The notes: generated by a model from the letters alone, not told the origin. A DNA stretch of 64,000 nucleotides from Macrostomum lignano (GCA_002269645.1 NIVC01000437.1:1-64000), one strand, 5' to 3'; counted from the stretch's first letter, positions 10,259 to 48,537 are shown. A program made the numbers and translations.

Positions 10259-10859
10259 AACGCCCGGATAAATGCGTCCTTAGTAGTCCTGTCAAACCTT
10301 GTAAGCCTTGACATGTCAGCAATGGCCCCCATAAACCTTGAAATCTAAAAAATCCCCTGTTAACCTTGAAGCCCGATAAAATATAACCCTCAACCCACAC
10401 CTGACCTAAACCTTACTTTAACCCAACCTAAAGCCTTGAAATCTCAGCAATTCTTCTCCCCTAAGCCTTGACATTTTAGTGATTCTTTCTTTAAGATTCA
10501 CAGCACTATAACGATTTCCACCAAGCTTTGACATCGTAGCAATTCCCAAATGAATCTTTTAACTTCGACATGACTTTTCTTTTATGTATACATAGTGCTA
10601 CTTTTATTTTTTACATGACTTTTCTTCTATCAGCGCCCCCCGTGACGAGCCAACAAAGAATGCAATAAAAAATGGAGTAAAGTACATGAACTTTGAAGTA
10701 GCTTCTGACTTTTGCTTTGACATCTCAGAAACCCCCCCCCGTAATCTCAGTTATTCTCTGAGAGCCTTTACGTCTCAGTTTTTCTCCCCAGCACAGCATT
10801 ATAGTTGCATTTAATTTTTACATGAACCCTTCATGTCTGACATGACGTTTCTTTTATTC

Positions 10860-11165
10860 TACCGTGACGCTTCTTAATTTTTTAAATGACACTTTCATTA
10901 GTTTTAAATGAGGCTTCTATGATTTTTTCTTGACGCTTCTATGATTTTTACATGATGCTTCTATGATTGTTTACATGACGCTTCTATGATTTTTATATGA
11001 CGCTTCTACGATTTTTTACATGACGCTTCTATGATTGTTTACATGACGCTTCTATGATTGTTTACATGACGCTTCTATGATTTTTTAAATGATGCTTCTA
11101 TGATTTTGTAAATGACGCTTCTATGATTTTTTAAATGATGCTTCTATGATTTTGTAAATGACGCT
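10860..11165. repeat. 22-23-bp ACATGACGCTTCTATGATT(G/T)TTT minisatellite, short copy fused to the Rep truncation point
   Basis: Same unit as 18260-22410. Rep homology stops at ...VLCPS and the frame terminates inside this repeat. Confidence 0.9.
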
Positions 11166-14100
11166 TTACGCTGGGACACAGCACTCCGTCCACAGTGTGC
11201 AGCGCCTCGAAGCTGGTTGGCCCTCTAACCTGCAGGAGGAGCATTCGCATATAAAACAGATCCCCTGCTCTCGGACTCACCGTGTACATTCGGGCAATGT
11301 TCGTGTTGTGCACAACACCAGGGTGGCCCTCAACTCTCGAACCCTTCTTGGCGCGGCGCCACTCCCTCTCGCTGTGGTGCCACACGAAGTAGGACGGCAC
11401 CTCGGTGTACACCAGGCCTCTAGCGAATTCATCAGTGCGGCACAGCTTGAAGAAAGCCGTCAGCGTCGAATCTCTGGGCGCCCTGGCCTTTGTGCTCGCA
11501 TTTTGCTCGTTGAAATACACGAGCTGCTCGTTAGACTTGTGCACGCACAATCGGATCACAGCCGGAAATCTGTTGTGCACCTGTTGTGTTTTAGTTTAAA
11601 AACCATATCATTATTTTCCCATTCTTTGCTCCTAGCACTGCCTTGCAAACATCTATGACTTACTTCAAAGCCCAAGATGGTATTCACGGCTTCCATTGGG
11701 CCTATGTAGCGCGCCAGCAGATACTCCTTGATCTCATTTCGCCCCTCCTTCTTGGCTTGAGTCGGAGCCTTGCTAGCTGAACCTTCCTGTCGTTCGCCAT
11801 CCGCAGCCTGCTCTCCTGGCCCGCTCGGCTTCTTGTTTGCCTCGAACTTGAACGACGCCATGTCGCCGCCTTTTAGCAAGTACTTGATCACGTACTTGAC
11901 CGACTTGACGGTGGCACAAACTTCAAAGTTCATGTGGCATTCGAAAAGGAGCAGCAGGCCCGGGTTGTATGGTACAACCGACCTGTATTTGTGCCAGGAA
12001 AAGAATTGCTAATTAATGATTTATGTATTCTAGCAATGGTAAATTAAACTTACAGTAAATAAACAATTTAGCAATATAAATAAACTAAACACAAGGCTAA
12101 ACTAAGTACTTTGCTTTCGTATTAAAGAATCAACCTTTCAATCAAGTCTGAAAAAACACCAACACCTCCTCACTCACCTGTTGTCCATGCGAATGCTGCG
12201 GCCTTTGAATAGTTTGTCCACCGTAAATCCGCCCATCTCAGGGGACAGCCTGCGATACAATGGGTAGCCAGTATCGCTGGTTAGGGTCGCCTGCTGGAAC
12301 TCCTTCGGGAAGCCCTTGCTGCACTGGCCGTCCACCATGCACGGGCAGGCTGGATTTACCACGCCGCAGGGGCCATGGATCATGTGAGTCTTCACCAGCT
12401 CGTGCAGCCTCGGCTGCTGCTGTGGGTCCGGGATCTCAGCGGACACGATTTTGTCGTAGCGGTCCGGAGTCACTCTCTGTCCACTGACCAGCCAGAGCAG
12501 AAAGTGCACATGGGGGAGACCTGTGGAAGACATAAACAAGTGATTCAAAGCGACGTATGAGTGATCACAATTTAGTCATGTAAATTAATTAAAATTCTAA
12601 ACCAGCGTTTGCATCGTAGAGAAAGCGGAGTTTGAATCATGGAGAAACTGGAGTTTGAATCATGGCTAAACCAGAGCTTAATTCCGGTTTGCAATGACCC
12701 CTTGCATAAAAATATGGATTGCTAAACCTGGAATGCAATTACAGAATGAAAATTGAAAGCGCAATTTGCTAACTTACCGCGCTTCTGATATTCCAGAGAG
12801 CAAACATGCGCGGCCTCCTTTCCAAAGCGCTTCCTCAGCTCGGCAAGCAGAGCCTTCTTCTTCAGCTCGAAAACACGCGTGACAATATCCGGCCGGTCCT
12901 CAGGTCGCTGTCCAGGCAGCAGCTGTGCACTGATTTCCGGCCACTTAGGGTTGCACGTCGCCGTGACAAACAGGTCCGGCTTGCCAAACTTTTGTACATA
13001 GGTCATGGCGTCTTGCAGCCTCTCCATCAGGTACCTTGGCCCGCCAACGAAGCTGGAGGACAGGAACACGTGCGCAGGCTTGCCAATATCAGTCGGATTT
13101 GTGTCGGTCGACCTGCCATCAGCAGCGAATAGAGCGTCTCGCAGACCGCTGTACGTCTCACTGCGCAGATCGCTCTGATGGGTCCGCAGATAGAGCAGCC
13201 TCTCTGACTCAATCTTGGCGCACATGTCCACCAGGTACTGCTGGAACAGCCGCCGTCCGTGGTGCAGCAGGCTGCTATGGCCCGCTCGCACCATGATTTC
13301 GCTGGCATAGTACTTCATCGGCGTCAGCTTGCGGCCATTGCTCATGCGCAGCTCCGGGTGCCAGCCGTCCTCGCCATGGGGGAACAGCAACACGTACTCC
13401 AGTGCATCATACGATCGGTGCGTTTTGCTAATCCTCTTGTAGCCGCCACCCCGCAGTTGAATGACAACATCTCGGCTAGTTGCTGGCTCATCACCGTCTT
13501 CAGGGGCCTCAGTGTCCTCAGTGTCCTTAACAATGAGGATGCCGACCTCGTTTGCCGTGGGCAAATTGTAGCGCCTGATTTTGAACGGTAGTAACAAATG
13601 CTTTTAACAAAACTCTTTACAACGGTAAACATTCCTGTGTACACAGGCACAAAGCTTTAAAAGACAGGTTTTAAAATGTGTTCGAATCCCTTTTCAGTTA
13701 TTGTTAGCTCACCGAATGTGTTCCCCAGAAGGTCTTCGGTCCGGGTGAATCACGATTCGCGCATCCACAAGCTCCGGATCCTCCATGATCCGCTGTGCTG
13801 CAGCCTTCAGGCTCCGAACGTAAAGGTTGCACTCGTGAAGCAACGTCTGTAGCAGCTCATGTAGCTCTGGCTTCACCCTATCGCTCAGACTCTGCTGGCT
13901 TTCGAGTTCGCGGTCAGTGAAGTACACCTGCCAGCCGCGAGGAACAGCAGACGCTTCAGCAAACAGCGGCATAGCAGTGTGGTGCAGCTGACCGCTGATG
14001 ATGTAGCTGGGATTCCAGCCTGGCACCAACCGCGGCTTGGCACTCAGCGAGGTCAGGTGCAGCACAGAGTTGTAGCTCCGGATGTTGGTCAGGAACTCTG

Positions 14101-15554
14101 AGCTCATGCCATGCCGGCCCATGTACAGGTCAGCCAGCAGCTGTGGCACAGTCCGGGTGGGCAGCTTCACCTTGCCGCCAGCACAGCAGAAATTGCCTGT
14201 CTCCATGCGGAACAGCTTGGCACCGCAATGGTTGCATGCCCAGTCCATTGGCCCGCAGTCATGGGCTGGAGCTTCTGGCCTCGCCATCGTCTCAGGCCTG
14301 ATAATAAAAATGGAATGTATCTCTTAGTAACTGTTAAATGTAAATGTAACTGTTCATTGTGTGTCAGTTTACCTTGCAGTAGCGGGTCCGTCTTCAGCGC
14401 GGCCCGCAGTCTCATGTTCCGCCGGCATCGCGCTGGGGCCCTTGGCCTTTTTGGCCCTCTTGGCAGGAGTTCTGCTTGCTGCCAGGCTTGGGAACTCAGC
14501 ATCTGTAAAGGCTTGCAAAAGCTCTCGAAGTCTCAGTGACTCGTAATGTTCATGGCGCAAAAGCACACGCACAATGGCATTAGGAGGGCGCAAATTAGCC
14601 CTGAAATATTGCATCACACTACCATTGGCCTGGTAAATGACCAGATCCACATCAAAGCAGCGGCTCAACAAAGAGGCAACTTCATCTGAAACATAAATTC
14701 CTGCTTGAAAAGAGGAATTCACGATCTCATCAGCACTCTCAGGTGCAATGAGGCCATCTGCAATCAGCTGTGGCATGAGTTCTGCAACACGGCAAGACAA
14801 GTCCTGCCGCAGGGAGGCTGCGTCAGTTTCCAGCGGGGTTCCACGCAGCTGATCACACACAGCATAAAAAAAGCAATTGCCATCACCAACAATGGGGATT
14901 ACCTGCAACTGCTCAAAGGGTACTATAGTTTCTGTACCTTGCTGCTGGGTGTCCGACCTAAGGGGCAATGGGTGAACGTAAGCACAGCAGCCTTAATTGG
15001 CTTTTTAAGACAATTCATTCCTCAAAAATCGTTATCCGCTTAATTTATACAGAATAAAATAGATACTACAAATTATCCCCTTCAAGGCAATTCAGAAAAA
15101 AACAAAAATAAAGACTTGTTATAAAAAGTTACTATACAACTCACCTAGAAACCACAGCTCCACGGCAACGAATCCGATCGGCTTCCAGTCGGGCAGCCCA
15201 CTCTGCCTCAGTCTCAGCCTCTCTGCGCTGAGCGTCCCGCTGCCGCTGTTCTTCCAGTCGGGCAGCCCACTCTGCCTCAGTCTCAGCATCTCTGCGCTGA
15301 GCATTCCGCTGCCGCTGTTCTTCCAGTCGGGCAGCTCGCTCTGCCTCAGTCTCAGCATGTCTGCGCTGAGCATCCCGCTGCCGCTGTTCTTCCAGTCGGG
15401 CATCCCGCTCTGCCTCAGTCTCAGCATGTCTGCGCTGAGCATCCCGCTGCCGCTGTTCTTCCAGTCGGGCATCCCGCTCTGCCTCGGATTCTGCCTGTCG
15501 CCGTCGCTTGGCATCGCGGCTCTTCTTTAAACTGCTGGCGCCGCGTCGAACCAT
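11131..15554 (-). CDS. Helitron Rep protein, 7 exons, 1162 aa: STPR repeats, OTU protease, zinc finger, Helitron_like_N and HUH/Y2 Rep; no Pif1 helicase. complement(join(11131..11580,11664..11982,12178..12520,12778..13574,13713..14297,14373..14957,15145..15554))
   Basis: Six GT-AG introns have matching phases (2,2,2,1,2,0). Splicing restores Helitron motifs GEHIR|RYNLPTANEV, EYQKRG|LPHVHFLLW, DNR|SVVPYNP, KYVIKYLLKG and ILGFE|VHNRFPAVIRL. OTU motifs are GDGNCFFYA and HEHYESL; the zinc finger is CNHC...CCAGGKV. Confidence 0.93.
15278..15490 (-). repeat. 69-bp coding tandem repeat giving 23-aa STPR-type repeats (4 full plus 1 partial; block spans ~15170-15490)
   Basis: E(S/T)EAE(R/W)xARLEEQRQR(D/N)AQRRxA repeats have the 23-residue period and ExxExRxxRL pattern of the FMBP-1 STPR DNA-binding domain. 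Confidence 0.8.
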
Positions 15555-16029
15555 GATTGAGAAATGAGAAGTGAAATGAAATTAGTTCAGAAAGAATGAT
15601 ATGGTTTGAAAGATGAAAGTTTGTGAATTTGGATGTCTGAAGAATCAGATAAGGTGCCCTTGAGCCAAACTATTACAGGCTATTTATCATCCAGTGGGCT
15701 GAATTGGAGCTTATCTTAAGACGCAGGGTAGAAACTGAAAAATCGATAAAGAAGAAAGGGGTCTAAATCTAAAAAACCTATGATTTGGGGTGTGGGCTCT
15801 CCAGGCCCGTGTGTCCAAATTCCGGGGCAGAGGGCTCACAATGTACACTGGTCTGCGCCAGCCAGTGAAAAAAAACTGTGAATGTAATCTATTTATGACT
15901 GTCTCGCCAGTGGGGTTGATACAGCTATGTACTTTTGACATAGTGAAATTCTTATCAGAGTTACCAGTATCACTGATATCAGTGATATCATCAATATCAG
16001 TGATAATCAGTATCACTTTTAACAAAACT

Positions 16030-16460
16030 GGTTTTGCAATGATTCAAACTCTGGTTTAGCCATGATTCAAACTCTGGTTTAGCCATGATTCAAACTCTGG
16101 TTTAGCCATGAGTCAGACTCTCGTTTAGCCATGATTCAAACTCTGGTTTTGCCATGATTCAAACTTTGGTTTAGCCATGATTCAAACTCTGGTTTAGTCA
16201 TGATTCAAACGATGGTTTAGCCATGACTTAAACTCTGGTTTAGCCATGATTCAAACAATGGTTTAGCCATGATTCAAACACTGGTTTTAGCCATGATTCA
16301 GACTCTGGTTTAGCCATGATTCAGACTCTGGTTTAGCCATGATTCAAACACTGGTTTTAGCCATGATTCAGACTCTGGTTTAGCCATGATTTAAACTCTG
16401 GTTTAGCCATGATTTAAACTCTGGTTTAGTCTGATTCAAGCTCTATTTTTGCAATGATTC
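16030..16460. repeat. 23-bp minisatellite TTTAGCCATGATTCAAACTCTGG, about 18 copies
   Basis: Directly visible tandem array between the Helitron 5' module and the Rep start codon. Confidence 0.95.
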
Positions 16461-16557
16461 AAAGTCAGATAATATTTTATTTACGATCATCTTCTTCATC
16501 TTCTTCTTCATTGATATTTATCTTCAATCACTACTGGCTGAAATTTGACGCAGTGCA

Positions 16558-16620
16558 GAATCGAACCCTAGCCGAGCCTATAACCAATTCCTAGTGCCTA
16601 CACATCGGCTATCGGCTAGT
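16558..16620 (-). other. tRNA-like/Pol III B-box segment inside element 1
   Basis: Minus strand GGTTCGATTC at 16567-16558 matches the B-box GTTCRANNC; the upstream A-box is degenerate. Confidence 0.4.
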
Positions 16621-18259
16621 CTGTTCGCATCTTTCTTGGCTATCTCTTTTCAATTGGAGAACATGAATTGTGGCCCTTATAATTCAATTCTTACAGCAAG
16701 TCAATTGGAGTAAAAAATTATGACATAATCAATTTCTCAGTCAGCCAGAATCAGTCTCAATTTAAGTTGGCAATATGGTTACGCAATTTCATTCAAGTTT
16801 TGTGTGCATTTGTTCGGCACTGTTTTCAACTTGTTGTGATGCAATCTTTATCACAATCGGAATTCAGTCAGTCAGTTTTTTCTCTAGCATTCTTACAATG
16901 CATTTCAGGTCGAAAGAGCCGCTTGACCTTTGCAAAAAATCATGTTTTTCGAATATTTAATCCCTTTAACATTGAGCAATTTCTTAGCCAATATGCATGT
17001 ACCGTCCCGGGAAAATTTCTGATCGAATGGTGCAAGTTTGAAGAAAATCGGTTGAGCCGTTCGGGAGAAAATCAATTACAAGCAAGCAACCAAGCATTTC
17101 ATTTTTAGTATATACTAGCAATCTACGCCCCCCGTTGGGGAGCCAAAGAAATGCAATACACGTTTTTTTAATAAGCTACATGTATCCTTGAAATCTTAAA
17201 AAATCTCCTATCAAACCTTGTAAGCCTTGACATGTCAGTAATTCCCCCCCACAAGCTTTAACATATCAACTTCCCCCCTTGACATCTCAGCCATGCCCCC
17301 AATAAGCCTTGGAAATCTAAAAATATCTGTCAACCTTCTAACCCTAACCCTAACCTAACCCTAAAGCATTGAAATTTCAGTAATTCTCTTTAAGAGTCAT
17401 TATAGCACTACTACAGCATTATAGCGATTCCCTGCAAGCCTCGACATCGTAGGGATTCCCAAATGAATATCTTAACTTCGACATGAAGCTTCTTTTATTT
17501 TTTACATTACGCTTTTTTAATCAGCGATCCCTCCCCTGAGGAGGCATCAAATAATGTAATAAAAAGTTTTCAATAAACTACATGTAGCTTCTGACTTTAG
17601 CCTTGAAATCTCATTTATACCCCCGTGAGCCTTGACATCTCAGCTATTCCCCCCGCAAGCCTTAACATGTCAGCGATGGCGCCCATAAACCTTGAAATCT
17701 GAAAAATCCCCTGCTAACCTTGAAACTCGATAAAATATAACCCTCAACCCACACCTGACCTAAACCTAACTTTAACCCAACATAAAGCCTTGAAATCTCA
17801 GCAATTCTTCTCCCCTAAGCCTTGACATTTTAGTGATTCCTTCTTTAAGAATCACAGCACTATAACGATTTCCACCAAGCTTTGACATCGTAGCAATTCC
17901 CAAATGAATCTTTTAACTTCGACATGACTTTTCTTTTATGTATACATAGTGCTACTTTTATTTTTTACATGACTCTTCTTCTATCAGCGCCTCCCGTGGC
18001 GAGCCAACAAAGAATGCAATAAAAAAAATTGAGTAAAGTACATGAACTTTGAATTAGCTTCTGACTTTTGCTTTGACATCTCAGAAACCCCCCCCCCCCG
18101 TAATCTCAGTTATTCTCTGAGAGCCTTGACGTCTCAGTTTTTCTCCCCAGCACAGCATTATAGCTGCATTTAATTTTTCCATGACACCTTTCATGTCTGA
18201 CATGACGCTTCTTTTATTCTACTATGATGCTTCTTAATTTTTTAAATGACACTTTCATT

Positions 18260-21200
18260 AGTTTTTAAATGACGCTTCTATGATTTTTTCATGACGATTC
18301 TATGATTTTTTACATGACGCTTCTATGATTTTTAGATGACGCTTCGATGATTGTTTACATGACGCTTATATGATTTTTAACATGACGCTTCTATGATTTT
18401 TAAAATGACGCTTCTATGATTGTTTACATGACGCTTCTATTATTTTTTACATGACGCTTCTATGATTTTTAACATGACGCTTCTATGATTGTTTACATGA
18501 CGCTTCTATGATTGTTTACATGACGCTTCTATGATTTTTTAAATGACGCTTCTATGATTTTTATATTACGCTCTTACGATTTTTTACATGACGCTTCTAT
18601 GATTGTTTACACGATGCTTCTATGATTTTTACATGGCGCTTCTATGATTGTTTACATGGCGCTTCTATGATTGTTTATATGACGCTTCTATGATTTTTAA
18701 ATGACGCTTCTACGATTTTTTACATGACGCTTTTATGATGTTTTAGATGACGCTTCTATGATTTTTTACATGACGCTTCTATGATTTTTTACATGACGCT
18801 TCTATGATTGTTTACACGATGCTTCTATGATTTTTTACATGACGCTTCTATGATTTTTTACATGACGCTTCTATGATTTTTACATGACGCTTCTATGATT
18901 TTTACATGACGCTTCTATGATTTTTTACATGACGCTTCTATGATTGTTTACATGACGCTTCTATGATTGTTTACATGACGCTTCTATGATTGTTTACATG
19001 ACGCTTCTATGATTGTTTACATGACGCTTCTATGATTTTTTAAATGACGTTTTTTGATTTTTATATGACGCCTCTATGATTTTTTAAATGACGCTTCTAT
19101 GATTTTTATATTACGCTCTTACGATTTTTTACATGACGCTTCTATGATTGTTTACACGATGCTTCTATGATTTTTTACATGACTCTTCTATGATTTTTAC
19201 ATGACGCTTCCATGATTGTTTACATGACGCTTCTATGATTATTTCATGACGCTTCTACGATTTCTGCAGGACGCTTCAATGATTTTTACATGACACCTCT
19301 ATGATTTTTACATGACGCTTCTATGATTGTTTACATGACGCTTCTATGATTGTTTACATGACGCTTCTATGCTTTTTACATGACGCTTCTATGATTGTTT
19401 ACATGGCGCTTCTATGATTGTTTACATGACGCTTCTATGATTGTTTATATGACGCTTCTATGATTTTTTAAATGACGCTTCTACGATTTTTTACATGACG
19501 CTTTTATGATGTTTTAGATGACGCTTCTATGATTTTTTACATGACGCTTCTATGATTTTTTACATGAAGCTTCTATGATTGTTTACATGACGCTTCTATG
19601 ATTGTTTGCATGACGCTTCTATAATTTTTTACATGACGCTTCCATGATTGTTTACATGACGCTTCTTTGATTTTTTACATGACGCTTCTATGATTGTTTA
19701 CATGACGCTTCTATGATTGTTTACATGACGCTTCTATGATTTTTTAAATGACGCTTCTATGATTTTTATATGACGCTTCTATGATTGTTTACATGACGCT
19801 TCTATGATTGTTTACATGGCGCTTCTATGATTGTTTACATGACGCTTCTATGATTGTTTATATGACGCTTCTATGATTTTTAAATGACGCTTCTACGATT
19901 TTTTACATGACGCTTTTATGATGTTTTAGATGACGCTTCTATGATTTTTTACATGACGCTTCTATGATTTTTTACATGACGCTTCTATGATTGTTTACAC
20001 GACGCTTCTATGATTTTTTACATGACGCTTCTATGATTTTTACATGACGCTTCTATAATTGTTTACATGACGCTTCTATGATTGTTTATATGACGCTTCT
20101 ATGATTTTTTACATGACGCTTCTATGATTTTTTACATGACGCTTCTATGATTGTTTACACGATGCTTTTATGATTTTTACATGACGCTTCTATGATTTTT
20201 TACATGACGCTTCTATGATTTTTTACATGACGCTTCTATGATTTTTACATGACGCTTCTATGATTTTTTATATGACGCTTCTATGATTGTTTATATGACG
20301 CTTCTATGCTTTTTACATGACGCTTCTATGATTTTTTACATGACTCTTCTATGATTGTTTACATGACGCTTCCATGATTGTTTACATGACGCTTCTATGA
20401 TTTTTTACATGACGCTTCTATGATTGTTTACATGACGCTTCTATGATTGTTTACATGACGCTTCTATGATTTTTTAAATGACGTTTTTTTGATTTTTATA
20501 TGACGCCTCTATGATTTTTTAAATGACGCTTCTATGATTTTTATATTACGCTCTTACGATTTTTTACATGACGCTTCTATGATTGTTTACACGATGCTTC
20601 TATGATTTTTTACATGACGCTTCTATGATTTTTACATGACGCTTTAATGATTTTTTCATGACGCTTCTACGATTTTTTACATGAAGCTTCTATGATTGTT
20701 TACATGACGCTTCTATGATTGTTTACATGACGCTTCTATGATTGTTTACATGACGCTTCTATGATTTTTTACATGACACTTCTATGCTTTTTACATGATG
20801 CTTCCACGATTTTTTACATGACACTTCTACGATTTTTACATGACGCTTCTATGATTTCTTACATGACGCTTCCATGATTGTTTACATGACGCTTCTATGA
20901 TTGTTTACATGACGCTTCTATGATTGTTTACATGACGCTTCTATGATTTTTTAAATGACGCTTCTATGATTTTTATATGACGCTTCTACGATTTTTTACA
21001 TGACTCTTTTATGATTTTTTACATGACGCTTCTCTGATTGTTTACATGACGCTTCTATGATTGTTTACACGACGCTTCTATTATTTTTTACATGACGCTT
21101 CTATGATTTTTTACATGACTCTTCTATGATTGTTTACATGACGCTTCTATGATTGTTTACATGAAGCTTCTATGATTGTTTACATGGCGCTTCTATGATT

Positions 21201-22410: not shown

Positions 22411-22460
22411 AGTTTTCCTGGCGTTAAAAAGCTTTAATTAAAAAAACTCTACTCTCTAAA

Positions 22461-22516
22461 AATTCGAACCATCGTTTCTGCATTTAGCAGTTCAGTCTGT
22501 TTACCTCTAGGCTAGC
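22461..22516 (-). other. tRNA-like segment (A-box plus B-box) inside element 2
   Basis: Minus strand reads AGCTAGCCTAGAGGTAAACAGACTGAACTGCTAAATGCAGAAACGATGGTTCGAATT. Confidence 0.5.
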
Positions 22517-23149
22517 TCTCATCGTTTTGATAACATGAATTCAGCACTTATAATTATAAGTTTCAAAACTCCAAGCATAGAGTAAATCACACGAGGCAGT
22601 TATTACATAATCAATTTCTCAGTCAGTCAGTATCAGTTAACAATATTGTTGCGCAATCTAAATAAAGTCTGGTGCTACGCTTCCACACTGCATTTTCAAT
22701 ACTGTGACGCAATTCAAGTCGGAGTTACAATTCAGTTATGATGTAATCTATTTCAGAATCAGAATTCAACCAGTCAGTTTTTTCTCTAGCATTCTTACAA
22801 TGCATTTCAAGTCGAAAAGTTTGCTTGACCTTTGCAAAAAAGCATGTTTTTCGAATATTTAATCGCTTTAACATGGAGCAATTTCTTAGCCAAGATGCAT
22901 GTACCGTCACGGGAAAATTTCTGATCGAACAGTGCAAGTCTCATGAAAATCGGTTAAGCCATTTTTTCTCTAATCGATTACAAGCAAGCAAGATTTTCAT
23001 TTTTAGTATATGGGACTAGCAATCTTCGCCCCCCGATGGGGGACATCTGGATAGAATCTCTGTTTTCTACAAGTAACAAAAAGACAGCCAAAAATCCTTC
23101 AAAAAGACAACAGACAAACTGCTCAAATGAAGTGCATTGCAAAAAGAAA

Positions 23150-26350: not shown

Positions 26351-26403
26351 AGAATTTTGTGTTTTTAAGGTGTTTTAATAAAAAAAACATTTTTCACTAC
26401 TAA

Positions 26404-35658: not shown

Positions 35659-35692
<34 letters not shown>

Positions 35693-38600
35693 CCTCTCTG
35701 CTCTCATTTCTCATATCTCATTTACGCTCTAACACTCTACTTTCTTGTCTCCCATCCTTCTTTCCTCCTTTCCACTATCCCCTGTCTCTTCTCTTCTCTC
35801 TTTTCTATCCTCTTCATTGCTCCTGTCATCTTCTCCCCTCTCTTCTCTAATCTCTAATCTCTTCTCTCTTATGTTCTCACTCATCTCTTTTTATCGCATC
35901 TGTCATCTCTCCTCTCCTCACTACTTTCCTCTCTACACTCTCTTATCTCTGATCTTTCATCTCTCTCCTCTCTCCTCTCTTTCTTCTCCTTTCGCTTCTC
36001 TCTCCTCTCTCTCCTCTCATCTCTACTACCTTATTTATATCTTCTCAGTGGTCTTTCTTCTGTACTCTCTCCTGTCTCCTTTCTCCCCTCTTTCTCCTCT
36101 CTTCTCTCTCCCTCCTCTCTCATTTCTCATCCCCCATCTCACTTTTTCGTTCTCCTCTACTCTCCCCTCTCTTCTATTTCCTCTGTATGCTCTTATCCCT
36201 CATCTATTCTCTCTCCTATAATCTCTCTTTTCTCCCTTTGCTATCTCATATCGCCCCTCTCATCTCCTCTCTCCTTCGTCCCCGCCTTACTCCCCTCTTC
36301 TCTTCCATCTGTCATGTCTAATCTCTCCACTCATTTCTACTCTATTGTCTATCATCTCATCTCTTTTCTTTTTTCATTCTTCTCTTTACTCTCTTCTCTG
36401 ACTGATTGAAGATGCCAAATCCATCAAGATCCTCTCCGCGAAGCAGCAATCTTGTCTGTGCAACTGAAAACCATCGAAATCCTCTTCGTGAAACTGAAAA
36501 CCATCGAAATGATCTCTTTAAAACTGGACTCAATTGAAATTTTCTCCGTCAAAAAGAATAAAATATCAGGATTCATTGGTTAGGGTTATTGTTAGGGTTA
36601 GGGTCAGGGTTAGAGCTACACACAGCTGCGTGTCCAAATAAAAAATTGAACCAATTGAATCAATTGATTGCGCAACCGATTTCTCAGTCAGTCAGTATCA
36701 GTCTCAGTTAAAGTTAAAAAAAGATTGCGCAATCTAAATCAACCCTCCAATCAACAGCAGTAGTGAGAAGTTGAACCCTCCCCCCAACTTTATCTATTAC
36801 GTCTCGCAAAACTGAGTACAATTTTTGCAAAAAGTTAAAAGTATGGAAATAGTTTTTCAAATGCTGTGCTTTTTCTTTTCATATTTAAAGCAAACAACTT
36901 ATATCCCCGAGCTCAGCGTTGCAAGATCTTTCCAGCAATATAAGTCTCTTCTCTCAAAGTTTAAAACTCGAGGAACAGTTAGCGTTTGAAACTGTCTGAT
37001 TTATAGCATTGAAGTATCGAGTGTACGTTCACTGCCTGCTTGCAAGTTGATGCATTGAATTTCAATGTCCAACAAATACACAGGGCTGCCCATTGAGAGG
37101 CAGGAAAACTTATCAGTAGCCATATCATTGCGCAATTATCTATACAGTCAGCCAGTAAGCCAGGGTCCAAGTGTACACACGCAGCCACTGAGAACGCTCC
37201 CACCCCCCACTGGAAAGAAAATACACTACAGAGATAGGGAAAAGTTGTGGCGCAATCACTAAAAATTCGTGCATTTTTTCAGCTCCAAGCAGAAAGAGGG
37301 GACAAATAAGATTATCAAAGGTCAAAACCGCCGTTTTCTGCTTTTTTAGGGATCTTAAAATGTAAAAATGAAAGATTAAAATAGCCTAAAGCCATCCTCG
37401 GAAAATTTGCAGTTTTCCAATATAAGTTTCAACGCTGAGTTGCAAGTATTCTAGGAGGAGTTATGCAACAGACAAACAAACACACAAACATCGCACCAAC
37501 TTTAGTATATAGACGAGTGGAACTCCTCCTTCGGAGGAGAAAGGGGAAGAACTCCCATCACCGGAATTCCATTCCCTGAAATCCATCAGCTGAAACTCCA
37601 CTTGAATCCCATCTTCCAAATCGTCTCCAAATTCTTTACAAAATCTTTGAAAGACCATAGCTCAAAGACTCTCACGTCTCTCATATCTCCTCTCTCTTCT
37701 ATTCGCTATTATCGTGACTCTTTTCTTTCTCCTCTCTCTCATCGCATCTCTACCCCTACTCCCTTATTTATCTCTTCTCCCTCGTCTTTCGTCTGTACCT
37801 TCTCCTGTCTCTTGTCTCCTCGCATCTATCCTATCTCTCCTCTTCACTTCTGTTTCCTGTCTCCTCTCTTCTCTCTTATCTCTCCCTCTTCTCTCCTCTC
37901 TCATATGTCATCTCTACTCACTTATCTATCGTCTCTCTTAACCCTCTCTCACTATTCTCTTTTCTCTCCTCTCTGCTCTCATTTCTCATATCTCATATAC
38001 GCTCTCACACTCTAATTTCCTGTCTCCCATCTTTCTTTCCTCCTTTCCACTATCCCCTGTCTCTTCTCTTCTCTCTTTTCTATCCTCTCCATTGTCTCTT
38101 TTCTCCTCTCCTTGCTCCTTTCATCTTCTCCCCTCTCTTCTCTAATCTCTAATCTCTTCTCTCTTATGTTCTCACTCATCTCTTTTTATCGCATCTCTCA
38201 TCTCTCCTCTCCTCACTACTTTCCTCTCTACACTCTCTCATCTCTGATCTTTCATCTCTCTCCTCTCTCCTCTCTCTCCTCTCATCTCTCTTGTCTCCGT
38301 TTGCTATCTCATATCTCCCCTCTCATCTCCTCTCTCCTCTTCTCTTCTCTCTCCTTCGTCCCCGCCTTACTCCCCTTTTCTCTCCCATCTGTCATGATTA
38401 ATCTCTCCACTCATTTCTACTCTGTTGTCTATCATCTTATCTCTCTTCTCTTTTCATTCTTCTCTTTACTCTCTTCTCTAACTGATTGAAGATGCCAAAT
38501 CCATCAAGATCCTCTCCGCGAAGCAGTCTGTGCAACTGAAAACCATCGAAATCCTCTCCGTGAAACTGAAAACCATCGAAATCCTCTCCGCGAAACAGAA

Positions 38601-40483
38601 ATCCTCTCCGTGAAACTGAAAACCATCGAAATTCTTTCTTTTAAACTGGACTCAATCGAAATTTTCTCCGTCAAAAAGAATAAATATCAGGATTCATTGG
38701 TTATTGTTAAGGGTTAGGGTTAGGGTTAGAGCTACACACAGCTGCGTGTTCAAATAAAAAATGAACCAATTGAAGCAATTGATTGCGCAACCGATTTCAC
38801 AGTCAGTCAGTATCAGTCTCAGTTAAAGTTAGCAAAAAAATTGCGCAATCTAAATCAACCCTCCAGTACACAGAGACCGACCCCTTTTCAATACGCAGTG
38901 GCAGTTAGAAATTGAACCTCAAACTTTTGGGGGCATTGAACAAAAAAATGAGTACAATCTTTGCATAAAGCTAAAAGTATGGAAATGGTTTTTTGAAACA
39001 TTTTATATCCTCGAACTCAGCGTTGCAAGATCTTTTCAGCAGTATAAGTCTCTTCTCTTAAAGTTTAGAACTCGAAGAGCAGTTAGCGTTTGAAAGTTCC
39101 CGTTTTAAAGCATTGAAATGTCGCGTGTACGTTCACTGCCTGCCAAAGAGGCTCGCAAGTTTATTCATTTACTACACAGGCCGGCTATTACACAGGGCAG
39201 CCTATTGAAAGGCACAGATAATAAAACAAAATTGATGGCGCAACTGATTTCACAGTATGTCAGTATCAGTCTCAGTTACAGTTAACAAAAAGATTGCGCA
39301 ATCTAAATCAACCCTCCAATACACAGCGCCCGACCGCCTTCCACTACGCAGTGGCAATTAGCAATTGAACCCCCAAATTTATCTCTGACCTATCGCAAAA
39401 ATAAGTACAATCTTTGCAGCAAGTTAAAAGTAAAAGTAATAAAATCGTTTTTTGAATGCTGTGCTTTTAATTTTTACAGTTAAAGCAAACAACTTATATC
39501 CCTGAACTCAGCGTTGCAAGATCTTTCCAGCAATATAAGTCTCTCCTCTCAAAGTTCAAAAATCGAGCAACAGTTAGCATTTGAAACTTTCTGATTTAAA
39601 GCATTGAAATATCGAGTGTACGTTCACTGCCTGCTAGAGAGGCTCGCAAATTGATGCATTGAATTTCACTGTCCGCCAGTTAGCTAGGGTCCAAGTGTAC
39701 ACACGCCGCCACTGAGAACGCTCCTATCCCCCCACTGGAGAGAAAATACACTGCCAAGTTAGCAAAATTTTATGGCGCAATCACTTAAAATTCATGCAAA
39801 TTTTCAGCTCCAAGCAGAAAGAGGGGACAATTAAGATTATCAAAGGTCAAGACCGCCGTTTTCTGCTTTTTTGAGGATCTTAGAAATTAAAATTTCAGAA
39901 TTAAAATAGCCTATAGCCGACCTCGGATAATTTCCAATCTTCCCATATAAGTTTCAACGCTGAGTTGCCACTATTCAAGGAGGAGTTGTCGAAATGACAG
40001 ACAGACACACAGACAGACAGACAAACAACACGTGAACTTTAGTATATGTAGAAGTGGAACTCCTCCTTCGGAGGAGAAAGGGGAAGAACTTCCATCACCG
40101 GAATTCTATTTTCTGAAATATCCATCAACTGAAATTCCATGTCTTGAACCCTATCTTCCAAATCTTCTCCAATTTTTTTGCAAAACCTTTCAAAGACCAT
40201 AGCTCAAAGACTTTCATGTCTCTCATATCTCCTCTCTCCTCTCTTCGCTATTATAGTGACTCTCTTCTTTCTCCTCACTCTCATCTCATCTCTACCCCTA
40301 CTTCCTTATTTATGTCTTCACCCTCGTCTTTCGTCTGTACCCTCTCCTGTCTCTTGTCTCCTCTCTTGTCTCATATCTCTCCTCTTCACTTCTCTCTTGT
40401 CTCCTCTCTTCTCTCCTATCTCTCCTTCTTCTCTCCTCTCTCATATGTCATCTCTACTCACTTATCTATCGTCTCTCTTAACC

Positions 40484-40517
<34 letters not shown>

Positions 40518-43500
40518 CCTCTCTGCTCTCATTTCTCATATCTCATTTACGCTCTAACACTCTACTTTCTTGTCTCCCATCCTTCTTTCCTCCTTTCCAC
40601 TATCCCCTGTCTCTTCTCTTCTCTCTTTTCTATCCTCTTCATTGCTCCTGTCATCTTCTCCCCTCTCTTCTCTAATCTCTAATCTCTTCTCTCTTATGTT
40701 CTCACTCATCTCTTTTTATCGCATCTGTCATCTCTCCTCTCCTCACTACTTTCCTCTCTACACTCTCTTATCTCTGATCTTTCATCTCTCTCCTCTCTCC
40801 TCTCTTTCTTCTCCTTTCGCTTCTCTCTCCTCTCTCTCCTCTCATCTCTACTACCTTATTTATATCTTCTCAGTGGTCTTTCTTCTGTACTCTCTCCTGT
40901 CTCCTTTCTCCCCTCTTTTCTCCTCTCTTCTCTCTCCCCTCCTCTCTCATTTCTCATCCCCCATCTCACTTTTTCGTTCTCCTCTACTCTCCCCTCTCTT
41001 CTATTTCCTCTGTATGCTCTTATCCCTCATCTATTCTCTCTCCTATAATCTCTCTTTTCTCCCTTTGCTATCTCATATCGCCCCTCTCATCTCCTCTCTC
41101 CTTCGTCCCCGCCTTACTCCCCTCTTCTCTTCCATCTGTCATGTCTAATCTCTCCACTCATTTCTACTCTATTGTCTATCATCTCATCTCTTTTCTTTTT
41201 TCATTCTTCTCTTTACTCTCTTCTCTGACTGATTGAAGATGCCAAATCCATCAAGATCCTCTCCGCGAAGCAGCAATCTTGTCTGTGCAACTGAAAACCA
41301 TCGAAATCCTCTTCGTGAAACTGAAAACCATCGAAATGATCTCTTTAAAACTGGACTCAATTGAAATTTTCTCCGTCAAAAAGAATAAAATATCAGGATT
41401 CATTGGTTAGGGTTATTGTTAGGGTTAGGGTCAGGGTTAGAGCTACACACAGCTGCGTGTCCAAATAAAAAATTGAACCAATTGAATCAATTGATTGCGC
41501 AACCGATTTCTCAGTCAGTCAGTATCAGTCTCAGTTAAAGTTAAAAAAAGATTGCGCAATCTAAATCAACCCTCCAATCAACAGCAGTAGTGAGAAGTTG
41601 AACCCTCCCCCCAACTTTATCTATTACGTCTCGCAAAACTGAGTACAATTTTTGCAAAAAGTTAAAAGTATGGAAATAGTTTTTCAAATGCTGTGCTTTT
41701 TCTTTTCATATTTAAAGCAAACAACTTATATCCCCGAGCTCAGCGTTGCAAGATCTTTCCAGCAATATAAGTCTCTTCTCTCAAAGTTTAAAACTCGAGG
41801 AACAGTTAGCGTTTGAAACTGTCTGATTTATAGCATTGAAGTATCGAGTGTACGTTCACTGCCTGCTTGCAAGTTGATGCATTGAATTTCAATGTCCAAC
41901 AAATACACAGGGCTGCCCATTGAGAGGCAGGAAAACTTATCAGTAGCCATATCATTGCGCAATTATCTATACAGTCAGCCAGTAAGCCAGGGTCCAAGTG
42001 TACACACGCAGCCACTGAGAACGCTCCCACCCCCACTGGAAAGAAAATACACTACAGAGATAGGGAAAAGTTGTGGCGCAATCACTAAAAATTCGTGCAT
42101 TTTTTCAGCTCCAAGCAGAAAGAGGGGACAAATAAGATTATCAAAGGTCAAAACCGCCGTTTTCTGCTTTTTTAGGGATCTTAAAATGTAAAAATGAAAG
42201 ATTAAAATAGCCTAAAGCCATCCTCGGAAAATTTGCAGTTTTCCAATATAAGTTTCAACGCTGAGTTGCAAGTATTCTAGGAGGAGTTATGCAACAGACA
42301 AACAAACACACAAACATCGCACCAACTTTAGTATATAGACGAGTGGAACTCCTCCTTCGGAGGAGAAAGGGGAAGAACTCCCATCACCGGAATTCCATTC
42401 CCTGAAATCCATCAGCTGAAACTCCACTTGAATCCCATCTTCCAAATCGTCTCCAAATTCTTTACAAAATCTTTGAAAGACCATAGCTCAAAGACTCTCA
42501 CGTCTCTCATATCTCCTCTCTCTTCTATTCGCTATTATCGTGACTCTTTTCTTTCTCCTCTCTCTCATCGCATCTCTACCCCTACTCCCTTATTTATCTC
42601 TTCTCCCTCGTCTTTCGTCTGTACCTTCTCCTGTCTCTTGTCTCCTCGCATCTATCCTATCTCTCCTCTTCACTTCTGTTTCCTGTCTCCTCTCTTCTCT
42701 CTTATCTCTCCCTCTTCTCTCCTCTCTCATATGTCATCTCTACTCACTTATCTATCGTCTCTCTTAACCCTCTCTCACTATTCTCTTTTCTCTCCTCTCT
42801 GCTCTCATTTCTCATATCTCATATACGCTCTCACACTCTAATTTCCTGTCTCCCATCTTTCTTTCCTCCTTTCCACTATCCCCTGTCTCTTCTCTTCTCT
42901 CTTTTCTATCCTCTCCATTGTCTCTTTTCTCCTCTCCTTGCTCCTTTCATCTTCTCCCCTCTCTTCTCTAATCTCTAATCTCTTCTCTCTTATGTTCTCA
43001 CTCATCTCTTTTTATCGCATCTCTCATCTCTCCTCTCCTCACTACTTTCCTCTCTACACTCTCTCATCTCTGATCTTTCATCTCTCTCCTCTCTCCTCTC
43101 TCTCCTCTCATCTCTCTTGTCTCCGTTTGCTATCTCATATCTCCCCTCTCATCTCCTCTCTCCTCTTCTCTTCTCTCTCCTTCGTCCCCGCCTTACTCCC
43201 CTTTTCTCTCCCATCTGTCATGATTAATCTCTCCACTCATTTCTACTCTGTTGTCTATCATCTTATCTCTCTTCTCTTTTCATTCTTCTCTTTACTCTCT
43301 TCTCTAACTGATTGAAGATGCCAAATCCATCAAGATCCTCTCCGCGAAGCAGTCTGTGCAACTGAAAACCATCGAAATCCTCTCCGTGAAACTGAAAACC
43401 ATCGAAATCCTCTCCGCGAAACAGAAATCCTCTCCGTGAAACTGAAAACCATCGAAATTCTTTCTTTTAAACTGGACTCAATCGAAATTTTCTCCGTCAA

Positions 43501-46500
43501 AAAGAATAAATATCAGGATTCATTGGTTATTGTTAAGGGTTAGGGTTAGGGTTAGAGCTACACACAGCTGCGTGTTCAAATAAAAAATGAACCAATTGAA
43601 GCAATTGATTGCGCAACCGATTTCACAGTCAGTCAGTATCAGTCTCAGTTAAAGTTAGCAAAAAAATTGCGCAATCTAAATCAACCCTCCAGTACACAGA
43701 GACCGACCCCTTTTCAATACGCAGTGGCAGTTAGAAATTGAACCTCAAACTTTTGGGGGCATTGAACAAAAAAATGAGTACAATCTTTGCATAAAGCTAA
43801 AAGTATGGAAATGGTTTTTTGAAACATTTTATATCCTCGAACTCAGCGTTGCAAGATCTTTTCAGCAGTATAAGTCTCTTCTCTTAAAGTTTAGAACTCG
43901 AAGAGCAGTTAGCGTTTGAAAGTTCCCGTTTTAAAGCATTGAAATGTCGCGTGTACGTTCACTGCCTGCCAAAGAGGCTCGCAAGTTTATTCATTTACTA
44001 CACAGGCCGGCTATTACACAGGGCAGCCTATTGAAAGGCACAGATAATAAAACAAAATTGATGGCGCAACTGATTTCACAGTATGTCAGTATCAGTCTCA
44101 GTTACAGTTAACAAAAAGATTGCGCAATCTAAATCAACCCTCCAATACACAGCGCCCGACCGCCTTCCACTACGCAGTGGCAATTAGCAATTGAACCCCC
44201 CAAATTTATCTCTGACCTATCGCAAAAATAAGTACAATCTTTGCAGCAAGTTAAAAGTAAAAGTAATAAAATCGTTTTTTGAATGCTGTGCTTTTAATTT
44301 TTACAGTTAAAGCAAACAACTTATATCCCTGAACTCAGCGTTGCAAGATCTTTCCAGCAATATAAGTCTCTCCTCTCAAAGTTCAAAAATCGAGCAACAG
44401 TTAGCATTTGAAACTTTCTGATTTAAAGCATTGAAATATCGAGTGTACGTTCACTGCCTGCTAGAGAGGCTCGCAAATTGATGCATTGAATTTCACTGTC
44501 CGCCAGTTAGCTAGGGTCCAAGTGTACACACGCCGCCACTGAGAACGCTCCTATCCCCCCACTGGAGAGAAAATACACTGCCAAGTTAGCAAAATTTTAT
44601 GGCGCAATCACTTAAAATTCATGCAAATTTTCAGCTCCAAGCAGAAAGAGGGGACAATTAAGATTATCAAAGGTCAAGACCGCCGTTTTCTGCTTTTTTG
44701 AGGATCTTAGAAATTAAAATTTCAGAATTAAAATAGCCTATAGCCGACCTCGGATAATTTCCAATCTTCCCATATAAGTTTCAACGCTGAGTTGCCACTA
44801 TTCAAGGAGGAGTTGTCGAAATGACAGACAGACACACAGACAGACAGACAAACAACACGTCAACTTTAGTATATACGAGGCCAACTCCTCCTTCGGAGAA
44901 GAAAGGGGAAGAACTCCAATCAGCGGAATTCCATTCCCTGAACTCCATAAGCGGAATCCCATTTTCCAACACCTCTCCGCGCAACAGAAATCGTCTCCGT
45001 GAAACTGAACACTATCGAAATCCTCTCCGTGAAACTGAACACCATCGAAATATTCTCCGCGAAATAGAAATCCTCTCCGTGAAACTGGACTAAATCGAAA
45101 TTTCTACGTCAAATAGCCCAGCTCTCAGAATTCATTGGTTAGGGTTAGGGTTAGGGTTGACAGCTGCGTGTTGAAAGGCGCCGTAAAAACATTGAACCAA
45201 TTAAATTGCGCAACTTATTTCTCAGGCAGTCAGTATCAGCCTCAGTTAAAGTTAACAAAAAGATTGCGCAATCTAAATCAACCCTCAAATACACAGCAAC
45301 CGACCCCCCTTCCAATACGCAGTGCAGCTAGAAATTGAACCCCCCCCCCCACCAACTATTGGGGGGTCGGTCGAACCCCCATTGAACTCCAAAATGAGCA
45401 CAATCTTTGCAGAAAGCTAAAAGTATGAAAATCTTTTCTTGAATGCTGTGAATTTAATTTTCATATTTAAAGCAAAAAACTTATATCCCCGAACTCATTG
45501 CAGCAAGATCTTTCCAGCAATATAAGTCTCTCCTCTCTAAGTTCAAAACTCGAGCAACAGTTAGTGTTTGAAACTTTCTGATTTTAAGCATTGAAATATC
45601 GAGTGTACGTTCACTGCCTGCTAAAGATGCTCGCAAGTTTATGCATTAAAATGCACTGAATTTCACTGTGCAAAAAATACACAGGGCTTCCTGTTAAAAA
45701 ACAGAACACAAATAGTTGCGCAATTGTCTATAAAGTCAGTCAGTGAGCCAGGGTTCAAGTGTACACACGCAGCCACTGAGAACGCGACCATCCCCCCACT
45801 TGAGAGAAAATACACTGCCAAGATAGAAAAATTTTATGGCGCAATCACTAAAATTGATGCAAATTTTCAGCTCCAAGCAGAAAGAGGGACAATTAAGATT
45901 ATCAAAGGTCAAGACCGCCATTTTCTGCTTTTTTAGGGATCTTAAAAATTGAAAATGAAAGATTAAAATAGCCTAAAGCCATCCTCGGAAAATTTGCAGT
46001 TTTCCCATATAAGTTTCAACGCTGACTTGCAAGTATTCTAGGAGGAGTTATCCAACAAACACACACACACACAGACAAACAACGCACCAACTTTAGTATT
46101 AAGACGAGGCCAACTCCTCCGATGGAGGAGAAAGGGGAAGAACTCCCATCACCGGAATTCCATTCCCTGAACTCCATCAGCTGAATCCCAAGACCCGAAT
46201 ATCATCATCTAACTGTTCTCCAAATCCATCAAAATCCTCTCCGTGAAACTGAACACCATCGAAATCTTCTCCGCGAAACAGAAATCCTCTCCGTGAAACT
46301 GGACTCAATCGAAAGTTTCTCCGTCAAACAACTAAACTCTCAGGATTCAGTGGTTAGGGTTTGGGTTAGGGTTGGAGCTGCACACAGCTGCGTGTTGAAA
46401 AGGTCCAATAAAATATGAGATAATTGAATCAAAAGATTGCGCAATTTACGCTCGTATTTCTAAGTCAGTCAGTATCAGTCTCAGTTAAAGTTAACAAAAA

Positions 46501-48505
46501 TATTGCGCAATCTAAATCAACCCTCCAATACACAGCGACCGACCCCCTTCCAATACGCAGTGGCAATTAGAAATTGAGCCCCCCAACTGTTGGGGGTCAG
46601 TCGAACACCATTGAACTCCTAACATGAGTACAATCTTCGCAAAAAGTTAAAAGAATGGAAATAGTTTTTCCAATGCAGAGCATTTAGTTTTCATATTTAA
46701 TGCAAACAATTTATATAATTGAAATCAGCATTGAAAGATCGTTTCCGGCAATATAAGTCTCTTCTCTCTAAGTTAAAAACTCGGGGAACAGTTTGCGTTT
46801 GAAATTTCCCAATTGAAAGCATTGAATTTTTGAGTGTACGTTCACTGCCTGCTACATAGGGAGGCTCGCAAATTTATTCATTGAATTTTACTGAAGCCCT
46901 AACACCCCCAATACGTACGGGGGTTTTATTTGCCCCAGTGCTCAATGCAAAAAATTGTGGCGCAATCGCTAAAAATTGATGTCAACCGGCCCGGTTACAC
47001 CCCCTTCAGCTGAAAGAATACACTACACAGATAGGCCAGCTGTTGTGGCGCAATCATTGCAAATTACGCAAGATGGGCATATTCCCCTATTGTTCTATTA
47101 TTTCTGCTTTTTTAGGGATCTTAAAATGTAAAAATGAAAGATTAAAATAGCCTATAGCCTGACCCGGAAAATTTGCAGTTTTCCCATATGAGTTTCAACT
47201 CTGAGTTGCAAGTATTCTAGGAGGAGTTATGCAACTGACATACAGACAAACATCACACCAACTTTAGTATAAGACGAGGCCAACTCCTCCTTCGGAGAAG
47301 AAAGGGGAAGAACTCCAATCAGCGGAATTCCATTCCCTGAACTCCATAAGCGGAATCCCATTTTCCAACACCTCTCCGCGCAACAGAAATCGTCTCCGTG
47401 AAACTGAACACTATCGAAATCCTCTCCGTGAAACTGAACACCATCGAAATATTCTCCGCGAAATAGAAATCCTCTCCGTGAAACTGGACTAAATCGAAAT
47501 TTCTACGTCAAACAGCCCAGCTCTCAGAATTCATTGGTTAGGGTTAGGGTTAGGGTTAGAGCTACACACAGCTGCGTGTTGAAAGGCGCCGTAAAAACAT
47601 TGAACCAATTAAATTGCGCAACTTATTTCTCAGGCAGTCAGTATCAGCCTCAGTTAAAGTTAACAAAAAGATTGCGCAATCTAAATCAACCCTCAAATAC
47701 ACAGCAACCGACCCCCCTTCCAATACGCAGTGCAGCTAGAAATTGAACTCCCCCCACCAACTATTGGGGGTCGGTCGAACCCCCATTAAACTCCAAAATG
47801 AGCACAATCTTTGCAGAAAGCTAAAAGTATGAAAATCTTTTCTTGAATGCTGTGAATTTAATTTTCATATTTAAAGCAAAAAACTTATATCCCCGAACTC
47901 ATTGCAGCAAGATCTTTCCAGCAATATAAGTCTCTCCTCTCTAAGTTCAAAACTCGAGCAACAGTTAGTGTTTGAAACTTTCTGATTTTAAGCATTGAAA
48001 TATCGAGTGTACGTTCACTGCCTGCTAAAGATGCTCGCAAGTTTATGCATTAAAATGCACTGAATTTCACTGTGCAAAAAATACACAGGGCTTCCTGTTA
48101 AAAAACAGAACACAAATAGTTGCGCAATTGTCTATAAAGTCAGTCAGTGAGCCAGGGTTCAAGTGTACACACGCAGCCACTGAGAACGCGACCATCCCCC
48201 CACTTGAGAGAAAATACACTGCCAAGATAGAAAAATTTTATGGCGCAATCACTAAAATTGATGCAAATTTTCAGCTCCAAGCAGAAAGAGGGGACAATTA
48301 AGATTATCAAAGGTCAAGACCGCCATTTTCTGCTTTTTTAGGGATCTTAAAAACTGAAAATGAAAGATTAAAATAGCCTAAAGCCATCCTCGGAAAATTT
48401 GCAGTTTTCCCATATAAGTTTCAACGCTGACTTGCAAGTATTCTAGGAGGAGTTATCCAACAAACACACACACACACAGACAAACAACGCACCAACTTTA
48501 GTATT

Positions 48506-48506
<1 letters not shown>

Positions 48507-48537
<31 letters not shown>
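48507..48537. repeat. (AGAT)7 microsatellite at the outer 5' end of the Helitron train
   Basis: Directly visible; reads (TCTA)n on the element strand. Confidence 0.95.

Follow-up and report, generated by a model that had tools for sequence, protein, structure and literature searches.

A decaying head-to-tail cluster of thirteen Helitrons from two families in Macrostomum lignano, probably founded by end-to-start joining and reshaped by recombination

A 64,000-nucleotide stretch of the Macrostomum lignano genome (GCA_002269645.1 NIVC01000437.1:1-64000; hereafter the window, with coordinates counted from its first letter) harbors, between positions 10288 and 48509, a 38-kb train of thirteen Helitrons that belong to two families (A, comprising E1-E3, and B, comprising E4-E13), lie on the minus strand throughout and are joined end to start. 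We regard this train as a decaying head-to-tail cluster, the founding joints of which were, on balance, probably made by rolling-circle transposase chemistry and which homologous recombination would later have reshaped. Random insertion cannot yield such a train; some process must therefore, as a preliminary description of the locus had argued, couple 3' ends to 5' ends.

The layout can be read from thirteen copies of a 5' motif, T[C/A]..ATACTAAA, all on the minus strand between 17.1 and 48.5 kb (plus coordinates 17105, 23003, 26920, 29188, 31746, 35213, 37502, 40039, 42328, 44866, 46093, 47264, and 48498). The first 12 of these 13 lie 5-8 nt downstream of the GC-rich 3' hairpin and short tail of the neighboring element, and host DNA between elements is absent at all 12 joints (12/12). 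The pattern GGAGGAGTTSSMCT-N(0-10)-ATACTAAA, i. e., a B-type hairpin arm, a gap, and the 5' motif, is matched 10 times as compared to 0 matches in 100 shuffles, and the 10-mer ATATACTAAA, allowing for at most one mismatch, 16 times as compared to 4.5 expected. The same-strand, end-to-start train of non-identical Helitrons without intervening host DNA that had been described initially thus stands, and so does its division into two families, which is borne out by comparison of the elements.

The seven joints quoted previously all read exactly as given, namely CTAG|TA at 17115/4, CTAG|TC at 23016/5, CTCG|TC at 37514/3, 42340/39, 46105/4, and 47275/4, and CTCG|TA at 44876/5. The five joints that had not been quoted carry variant 3' ends (CACT|TC at 26933/2, TTCG|TA at 29200/199, ACTC|TA at 31758/7, and CTTC|TA at both 35225/4 and 40051/0), and hence the term "precise" is to be taken as exactness to within 1-3 nt. 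Altogether, ten distinct junction sequences occur at the 12 joints. Three of them, although nearly alike in their ~100-nt flanks, are set apart by indels of 1-2 nt right at the joint (CACTTCG|TA, CACTC|TA, and CACTTC|TA), which hints at separate joining events or at sloppy ends. At the A|B joint, the 5' end of family-A E3 directly abuts the 3' end of family-B E4. The units span 1.2-6.8 kb, and only the pairs E7/E9, E8/E10, and E11/E13 are at least 98.5% alike. A homogeneous rolling-circle concatemer of one element is ruled out by these unequal unit lengths, by the presence of two families, and by the ten joint sequences.

Canonical Helitrons (Helitron1) encode a Rep protein with a HUH motif and two catalytic tyrosines as well as a PIF1-type helicase, start with 5'-TC, end with 3'-CTRR preceded by a GC-rich hairpin at a distance of ~10 nt, and insert between a host A and T without target-site duplication. 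The family-A termini are consistent with such ends: they start with T(CC/CCC)ATATACTAAAAATG, the initial dinucleotide being TC in E2 and E3 and TA in E1, and in E2 and E3 a hairpin of the type CCCC(C)-loop-GGGG(G), located 13 nt from the end, is followed by CG(T/A)AGATTGCTAG, with CTAG as the 3' end. Members of family B (1.2-3.5 kb) start with T(A/C)..ATACTAAAGTTG, behind which comes a (TGTC)n microsatellite (AGAC/GTCT-type microsatellites are found just inside all B-family 5' ends); they continue with a purine-rich, repetitive interior and close with CTCCTCC-GAA-GGAGGAG and then TTCCACTCG or TTGGCCTCG, with the hairpin 9 nt from the end. The loops of the 3' hairpins vary (GAA or ATC in family B), while their stems are conserved. 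Both families have the 5' 10-mer ATATACTAAA in common, whereas their 3' ends are unrelated, a constellation that would be compatible with one transposase or with related transposases acting on the two.

An assignment to Helitron2/Helentron was considered and rejected for want of asymmetric terminal inverted repeats: in 11 of the 13 elements, the last 300 nt are free of any copy of the 5' end in inverted orientation (11-mers, at most two mismatches), and the two matches that did occur are AT-rich and no more than chance would give, since 64 of 200 shuffles match as well. No AP-type endonuclease domain was called on the related 7.2-kb contig L001, which has an RPA-like OB fold instead and is incomplete. 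As the inverted repeats typical of Helitron2/Helentron are missing, the train elements are by anatomy canonical-type Helitrons, the 3' tails of family B excepted.

The boundary of family A can furthermore be checked outside the train on a degenerate solo 3' fragment at 51340-51577, which lies on the plus strand, i. e., opposite to the train, between apparent host exons, and represents the sole solo terminus in the window. It carries ~30-bp ...GAATTGCTGAGATGTCAAGGCTT... repeats, and its similarity to family A stops at ...GATTGCCAG, C(C/T)AG, the fragment ending ...GGGGGGCGTAGATTGCCAG, behind which come a T and host sequence without relation to the element. Because the similarity stops there, the fragment speaks for C(T)AG being where family A truly ends. 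No solo copy of family B is present in the window.

E1 (10288-17114, minus strand; 5' end TATATACTAAAAATG at 17114) is a defective autonomous Helitron and the sole Rep carrier in the train. Its Rep region matches Pfam Helitron_like_N at 12722-13597 (E = 4e-46), with a HUH motif (HVH) at 12504-12512 and a tyrosine motif (YVIKY) at 11880-11894; the frame is broken into several open reading frames (ORFs), as is likewise the case in related copies. The closest relatives of this Rep, 83% identical, were found on the Logan contigs L001-L005, which continue into a PIF1/AAA_30 helicase (PF05970/PF13604) and an RPA-like OB fold; the contigs L001-L006 comprise coding regions only and no termini. Homology of E1 to L001-L005 ends ~130 codons into their PIF1 ORF, where a 23-bp minisatellite begins that has replaced the helicase in E1 (10865-11166). 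A PIF1-type helicase after Rep is thus present in the lineage and not in E1, which represents a deletion derivative, and with the loss of the helicase the train is left without a working transposase. An OTU protease domain was not accepted for E1, given that the match of its OTU-like ORF (14369-14968) is sub-threshold only (E = 0.13, with E = 0.008 for the relative L001). Upstream of this ORF, a 69-bp repeat (4.4 copies, 96% identity, 15182-15485, minus strand) lies within a further E1 ORF (15141-15554), the product of which is an E/R/Q-rich repeat; the related contig L002 contains a weaker match to this region.

E1 is also incomplete at its other end. It is ~95% identical to E2 up to about 10290-10297 and has no counterpart of the last ~85 nt of E2, which include the hairpin and CTAG; this missing 3' piece does not turn up anywhere to the left of E1 in the window either. 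Position 10288, which had been taken as the 3' edge of the train, is a truncation and not a Helitron 3' terminus. The earlier statement that the train lies beside its own Rep gene has to be revised in the same sense, as Rep lies inside the train, in E1, that is, in an element devoid of both helicase and 3' terminus. Beyond the truncation, the adjoining 9000-10287 comprises a GC-rich block with CCGCAGGCACCCCGAGTGTACACTCTACCGAG repeats, the palindrome GATCACTAGGTGATCGATACGCGTATCGATATCGGCGC, and an AT-rich block with TGTAGGTGCA repeats, and its minus strand starts with ACTACTAAGG, which loosely resembles a Helitron 5' end. Just past the truncated end of E1 lies a 6.4-kb satellite (2618-8996) with a 20-bp unit (CTCAAATCGGCGCTGGAAAG), higher-order periods of 138 and 158 bp, and a strong A-over-T skew.

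The two other family-A members, E2 (17115-23015, minus strand; 5' end TCCCATATACTAAAAATG, 3' end CCCCAACGGGGGGCGTAGATTGCTAG) and E3 (23016-26932, minus strand; 5' end TCCTATATACTAAAAATG, 3' end CCCCCATCGGGGGGCGAAGATTGCTAG), are non-autonomous, non-coding, and consist mostly of minisatellite, which amounts to 185 copies of a 23-bp unit in E2 (18200-22409) and to 49 copies of an 18-bp repeat (23163-24039) plus 95 copies of a 23-bp repeat (24167-26350) in E3. The tail of E2 is built of three ~460-bp modules, each of which closes with hairpin and tail, and only the last of which bears CTAG; internal pseudo-3' termini without CTAG are accordingly found at 17974-18019 and 17518-17559 in E2 and additionally at 10620-10665 in E1.

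Family B begins, still on the minus strand, with E4 (26933-29199; 5' end TACATATACTAAAG, 3' end ...CTCCTCCGAAGGAGGAGTTCCACT) and E5 (29200-31757; 3' end ...GTTCCACTTCG), both of 5' type I and 3' type I. E6 follows (31758-35224; 3' end ...GTTCCACTC); its 5' 1.4 kb matches E8 and E10 at ~100% identity, and its 3' part is distinct and contains an internal duplication. E7 (35225-37513; 5' type II, TCTATATACTAAAG; 3' type I, ...CCACTTC) is 99.8% identical to E9 (40051-42339), its recent duplicate, and E8 (37514-40050; 5' type I; 3' end ...CCACTCG) is 99.9% identical to E10 (42340-44875), which is a recent duplicate of E8 apart from ~20 nt at its extreme 5' end (TATATACTAAAGTTGACG). The remaining three are short forms, comprising E11 (44876-46104; 5' type II, TCTTAATACTAAAG; 3' type II, ...GTTGGCCTCG), E12 (46105-47274; 3' end likewise ...GTTGGCCTCG, with the hairpin loop being ATC instead of GAA and the stem retained), and E13 (47275-48509), the 5'-most member of the train. 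E11 and E13 are 98.5% identical from first base to last, whereas their 5' flanks (the 3' end of E12 for E11, host DNA for E13) are unrelated, a pattern that fits separate arrivals of sister copies.

The identities among E6-E10 reflect a recent duplication. A windowed three-way alignment revealed a tandem period of 4,826 bp, made up of one E7-type and one E8-type element, that is repeated 2.29 times at ~100% identity (33793-44860), in line with self-BLAST (33437-40117 versus 38271-44942, 99.2% identity). Its boundaries lie inside elements, on one side ~1.4 kb within E6/E8/E10 and on the other ~20 nt inside E10, counted from its 5' end, and as they do not coincide with element termini they bear the signature of unequal homologous exchange and not of transposition. 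With a multi-unit period, very high identity, and edges unrelated to element ends, the region has the properties of a higher-order tandem repeat. This duplication accounts for the equivalence of E7 with E9, of E8 with E10, and for the 5' 1.4 kb of E6, and hence for the fact that only ten distinct junction sequences exist.

The B elements display two subtypes at the 5' end and two at the 3' end, which are paired in three ways. Recombination is further visible in a windowed best-match map, which shows these elements to be mosaics of 95-98% identical segments with different neighbors, which implies that much of what appeared as different element types can stem from recombination within the array and not from separate arrivals. 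The argument that termini are far better conserved than interiors, and that the elements must hence have arrived independently, is weakened accordingly, because interiors also match at 95-98%, with different neighbors. Tandem duplication and recombination are active in the locus at every scale, from 18-23-bp minisatellites over ~460-bp modules to whole elements. The initial claim that non-identical elements were concatenated by repeated joining events consequently survives in part: the A|B joint and the unlike neighbors remain, and some joints do need 3'-to-5' joining, but E7/E9, E8/E10, and part of E6 are recent duplicates, and the B elements are mosaics.

How could such a cluster have come about? 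In the scenario that we favor, a transposase would have linked the cleaved 3' end of one element to the 5' end of another, either by integration of an incoming element exactly at a resident terminus or by integration of a multimer. At the resident 5' junction, host A|T(C), the site that the transposase itself nicks coincides with a permissible A|T target, and integration there would give the observed structure; integration of a multimer or of mixed circles would give it equally. At least the A|B joint and the joints among the structurally unlike A members and B variants would be of this origin. Subsequently, unequal crossing-over would have generated the 4.8-kb two-element unit in its 2.3 copies, gene conversion together with crossing-over would have produced the mosaic B elements, and the copy number of internal modules and minisatellites would have shifted. 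Recombination can neither make a first head-to-tail pair that is exact at both termini nor join A to B or structurally different A members to one another, so that a joining mechanism is needed; that a transposase provided it, which end was targeted, and in what order the events took place is what we infer. Since E1, the sole coding member, lacks helicase and 3' end, the locus is now inert cargo.

Several observations weigh against this scenario. The 3' ends of family B (CTCG, CTTC, CTC, and CACT) are variable and fall outside the CTRR rule, and the B termini are defined from the array itself alone. Given that the B elements share 95-98% identical segments as mosaics, most B|B joints could descend from one founding joint, and the joints made by a transposase may number as few as about 3-5. 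The ~100% identical repeat could, moreover, be an assembly artefact. Finally, either end may have been the target, and multimer integration may account for the joints in place of targeting. More tentative than the scenario as a whole, and rather doubtful at present, is the idea that the transposase of this lineage prefers the exact termini of resident Helitrons, with the donor-site nick A|TC serving as target. If true, different families would stack end to start into "trains", which would constitute safe landing sites, and any 5' end together with any downstream 3' end could found a chimeric family.

Among the alternatives, a purely recombinational origin deserves the most attention, although we consider it unlikely. 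Here, one adjacent pair of an A and a B Helitron would have been expanded by unequal crossing-over, slippage, and divergence into a satellite-like array with kilobase-sized monomers, without any further transposase joints. The demonstrated recent tandem duplication, the mosaicism of the B elements, and the tandem repeats found at every scale in these elements all agree with such an origin, and Helitron-derived satellite-like arrays are known (PMC11934779, PMC12001565). However, to turn a solo element into the first head-to-tail pair, a duplication would have to break precisely at the two termini, and recombination offers no means for this; at the A|B and A|A joints, the sequences that adjoin are unrelated; the terminal types of 5' and 3' ends are combined in different ways; and E13 matches E11 to its very first base, although it is located beside non-homologous host DNA.

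The opposite extreme, in which every joint arose independently, be it by homing to Helitron ends or from mixed circles, and in which the composite macro-element is mobile by virtue of its own Rep, appears to us somewhat less likely still. The heterologous A|B joint, the structurally unlike neighbors, the unrelated 5' flanks of the sister copies E11 and E13, and the microheterogeneity that sits exactly at joints would all be accounted for, and the Helraiser transposase indeed cleaves and joins right terminal sequence-left terminal sequence (RTS-LTS) junctions precisely (PMC5876387). Yet at least three elements and three joints derive from the ~100% identical 4.8-kb tandem duplication with its edges inside elements, and the B mosaics indicate recombination within the array. 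The macro-element, which had been proposed in the preliminary description, finds no backing in the locus: with E1 lacking helicase and 3' terminus, the train has neither a transposase of its own nor an outer 3' end, no multi-element segment was encountered a second time in a different flanking context, and there is no sign of the train moving as a unit. An assembly artefact, in which reads of dispersed copies were chained via repeated Helitron ends or in which the tandem repeat was over-expanded, is very improbable, for even though 2.29 copies at ~100% identity represent the type of region in which assemblers miscount, ten different junction sequences connect elements that differ over kilobases, the host flanks or sudden identity breaks that chaining would leave are not seen, and similar arrays exist in well-assembled genomes (PMC5876387, PMC11934779).

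At its outer 5' end, the train borders on a host (TAGA)n microsatellite (48510-48537). On the element strand, the terminal T of E13 at 48509 is preceded by a host A within this (CTAT)n microsatellite, as would be expected for an A|T insertion. The last exon of a gene for an ASC/ENaC-type (amiloride-sensitive sodium) channel (about 48674-49210, plus strand; Pfam ASC, E = 4e-17) starts ~165 bp beyond the end of the train, and an intron-less ORF of 618 amino acids of the Methyltransf_22/FkbM type is located at 58252-60108 on the minus strand, its sole database homologue being a Saccoglossus protein with 38% identity. A possible miniature Helitron-like element at 57529-57884 (plus strand) starts with TACATATACTAAA, which is identical over 13 nt to the 5' ends of family B, has an (AGAC)n-rich interior, and ends with GACAGTGTCAGCAAGCTTCTAG followed by T; its 5' flank is T and not A. 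Host-side repeats furthermore include a 26-bp minisatellite (15.7 copies, 52634-53041), (AGAC)49 at 56421-56617, and an (ACAG)n/44-bp compound repeat at 57573-57867.

Searches for cargo or for a target of clustering gave no candidates that could be retained. Captured genes in B elements find no support, as the long plus-strand ORFs are low-complexity S/L/P-rich products of the CT-rich strand without homologues, and neither does an RNA gene as clustering target, as there are no Rfam or tRNA matches in the window. In the search for further copies of the families, two metagenome scans with 24-26-mers of family B and a protein search with an ORF across a B 3' end yielded no match in the searched collections, in which the source species is not represented.

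Clusters of this kind are not without precedent. Head-to-tail junctions and tandem Helitron arrays have been described in bat and plant genomes (PMC5876387), in Drosophila, rice, and maize (PMC5148889), in Bombyx mori (PMC4067079), on the Y chromosome of D. pseudoobscura (10.1101/2021.06.02.446622), and in the subtelomeres of Hydractinia (PMC11934779), with plant centromeres and a Myotis bat being among the settings reported or cited (PMC5876387, PMC5148889, PMC4067079, 10.1101/2021.06.02.446622, PMC11934779). They have in common with the train that same-strand Helitrons are joined 3' end to 5' end without host DNA and have later grown locally. Most known arrays, however, consist of one family or of truncated units, whereas neighbors in the train differ in length (1.2-6.8 kb), terminal subtype, and family. 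Heterologous elements that abut, as in the train, have been noted as well: according to a citing statement, to which this comparison is confined, distantly related Helitrons are direct neighbors in both the bat and the maize genome (PMC4067079, with reference to Thomas et al. 2014 and Yang & Bennetzen 2009).

As to the chemistry, the Helraiser transposase makes and cleaves precise RTS-LTS joints, which are found in circular intermediates (PMC4778049, PMC5876387). The joint type of the Helraiser circle, CTAG|TC, is identical to that of the train at 23016/5, which supplies a chemistry able to make such joints; the Helraiser joints are, however, extrachromosomal and formed by a single element, whereas those of the train are chromosomal, connect different elements, and in family B involve CTCG-like tails. 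That resident Helitron ends may serve as integration targets has been suggested in the literature, in which we found no demonstration.

The internal structure of the elements likewise has parallels. Multiple termini and pseudo-termini resulting from nested insertions are known from maize Helitrons (PMC3288121), and fungal Helitrons may have multiple 5' termini or three tandem copies (PMC5148889). The internal pseudo-3' termini without CTAG in E1 and E2 resemble the maize type, yet, unlike these relics within one element, the internal termini of the train are mostly intact ends of full elements. Large internal minisatellites (in the train, 23-bp x185 and 18-bp x49) are shared with Heli2Xen of Xenopus (PMC12001565) and with Helitrons of Paramecium (PMC13085455), although the repeat units and hosts are different, and Heli2Xen has been assigned to Helitron2, whereas the train elements lack asymmetric terminal inverted repeats.

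Since comparable arrays and abutting unrelated Helitrons have been reported before, the train is best seen as a long and heterogeneous case of a known kind of cluster and, as it stands, as a transposon cluster that is defective and gives no indication of a new mechanism. With thirteen consecutive elements from two families it is nonetheless an unusually long and clean head-to-tail example, in which a single locus displays both modes of growth, namely joints at exact termini and, thereafter, unequal recombination.

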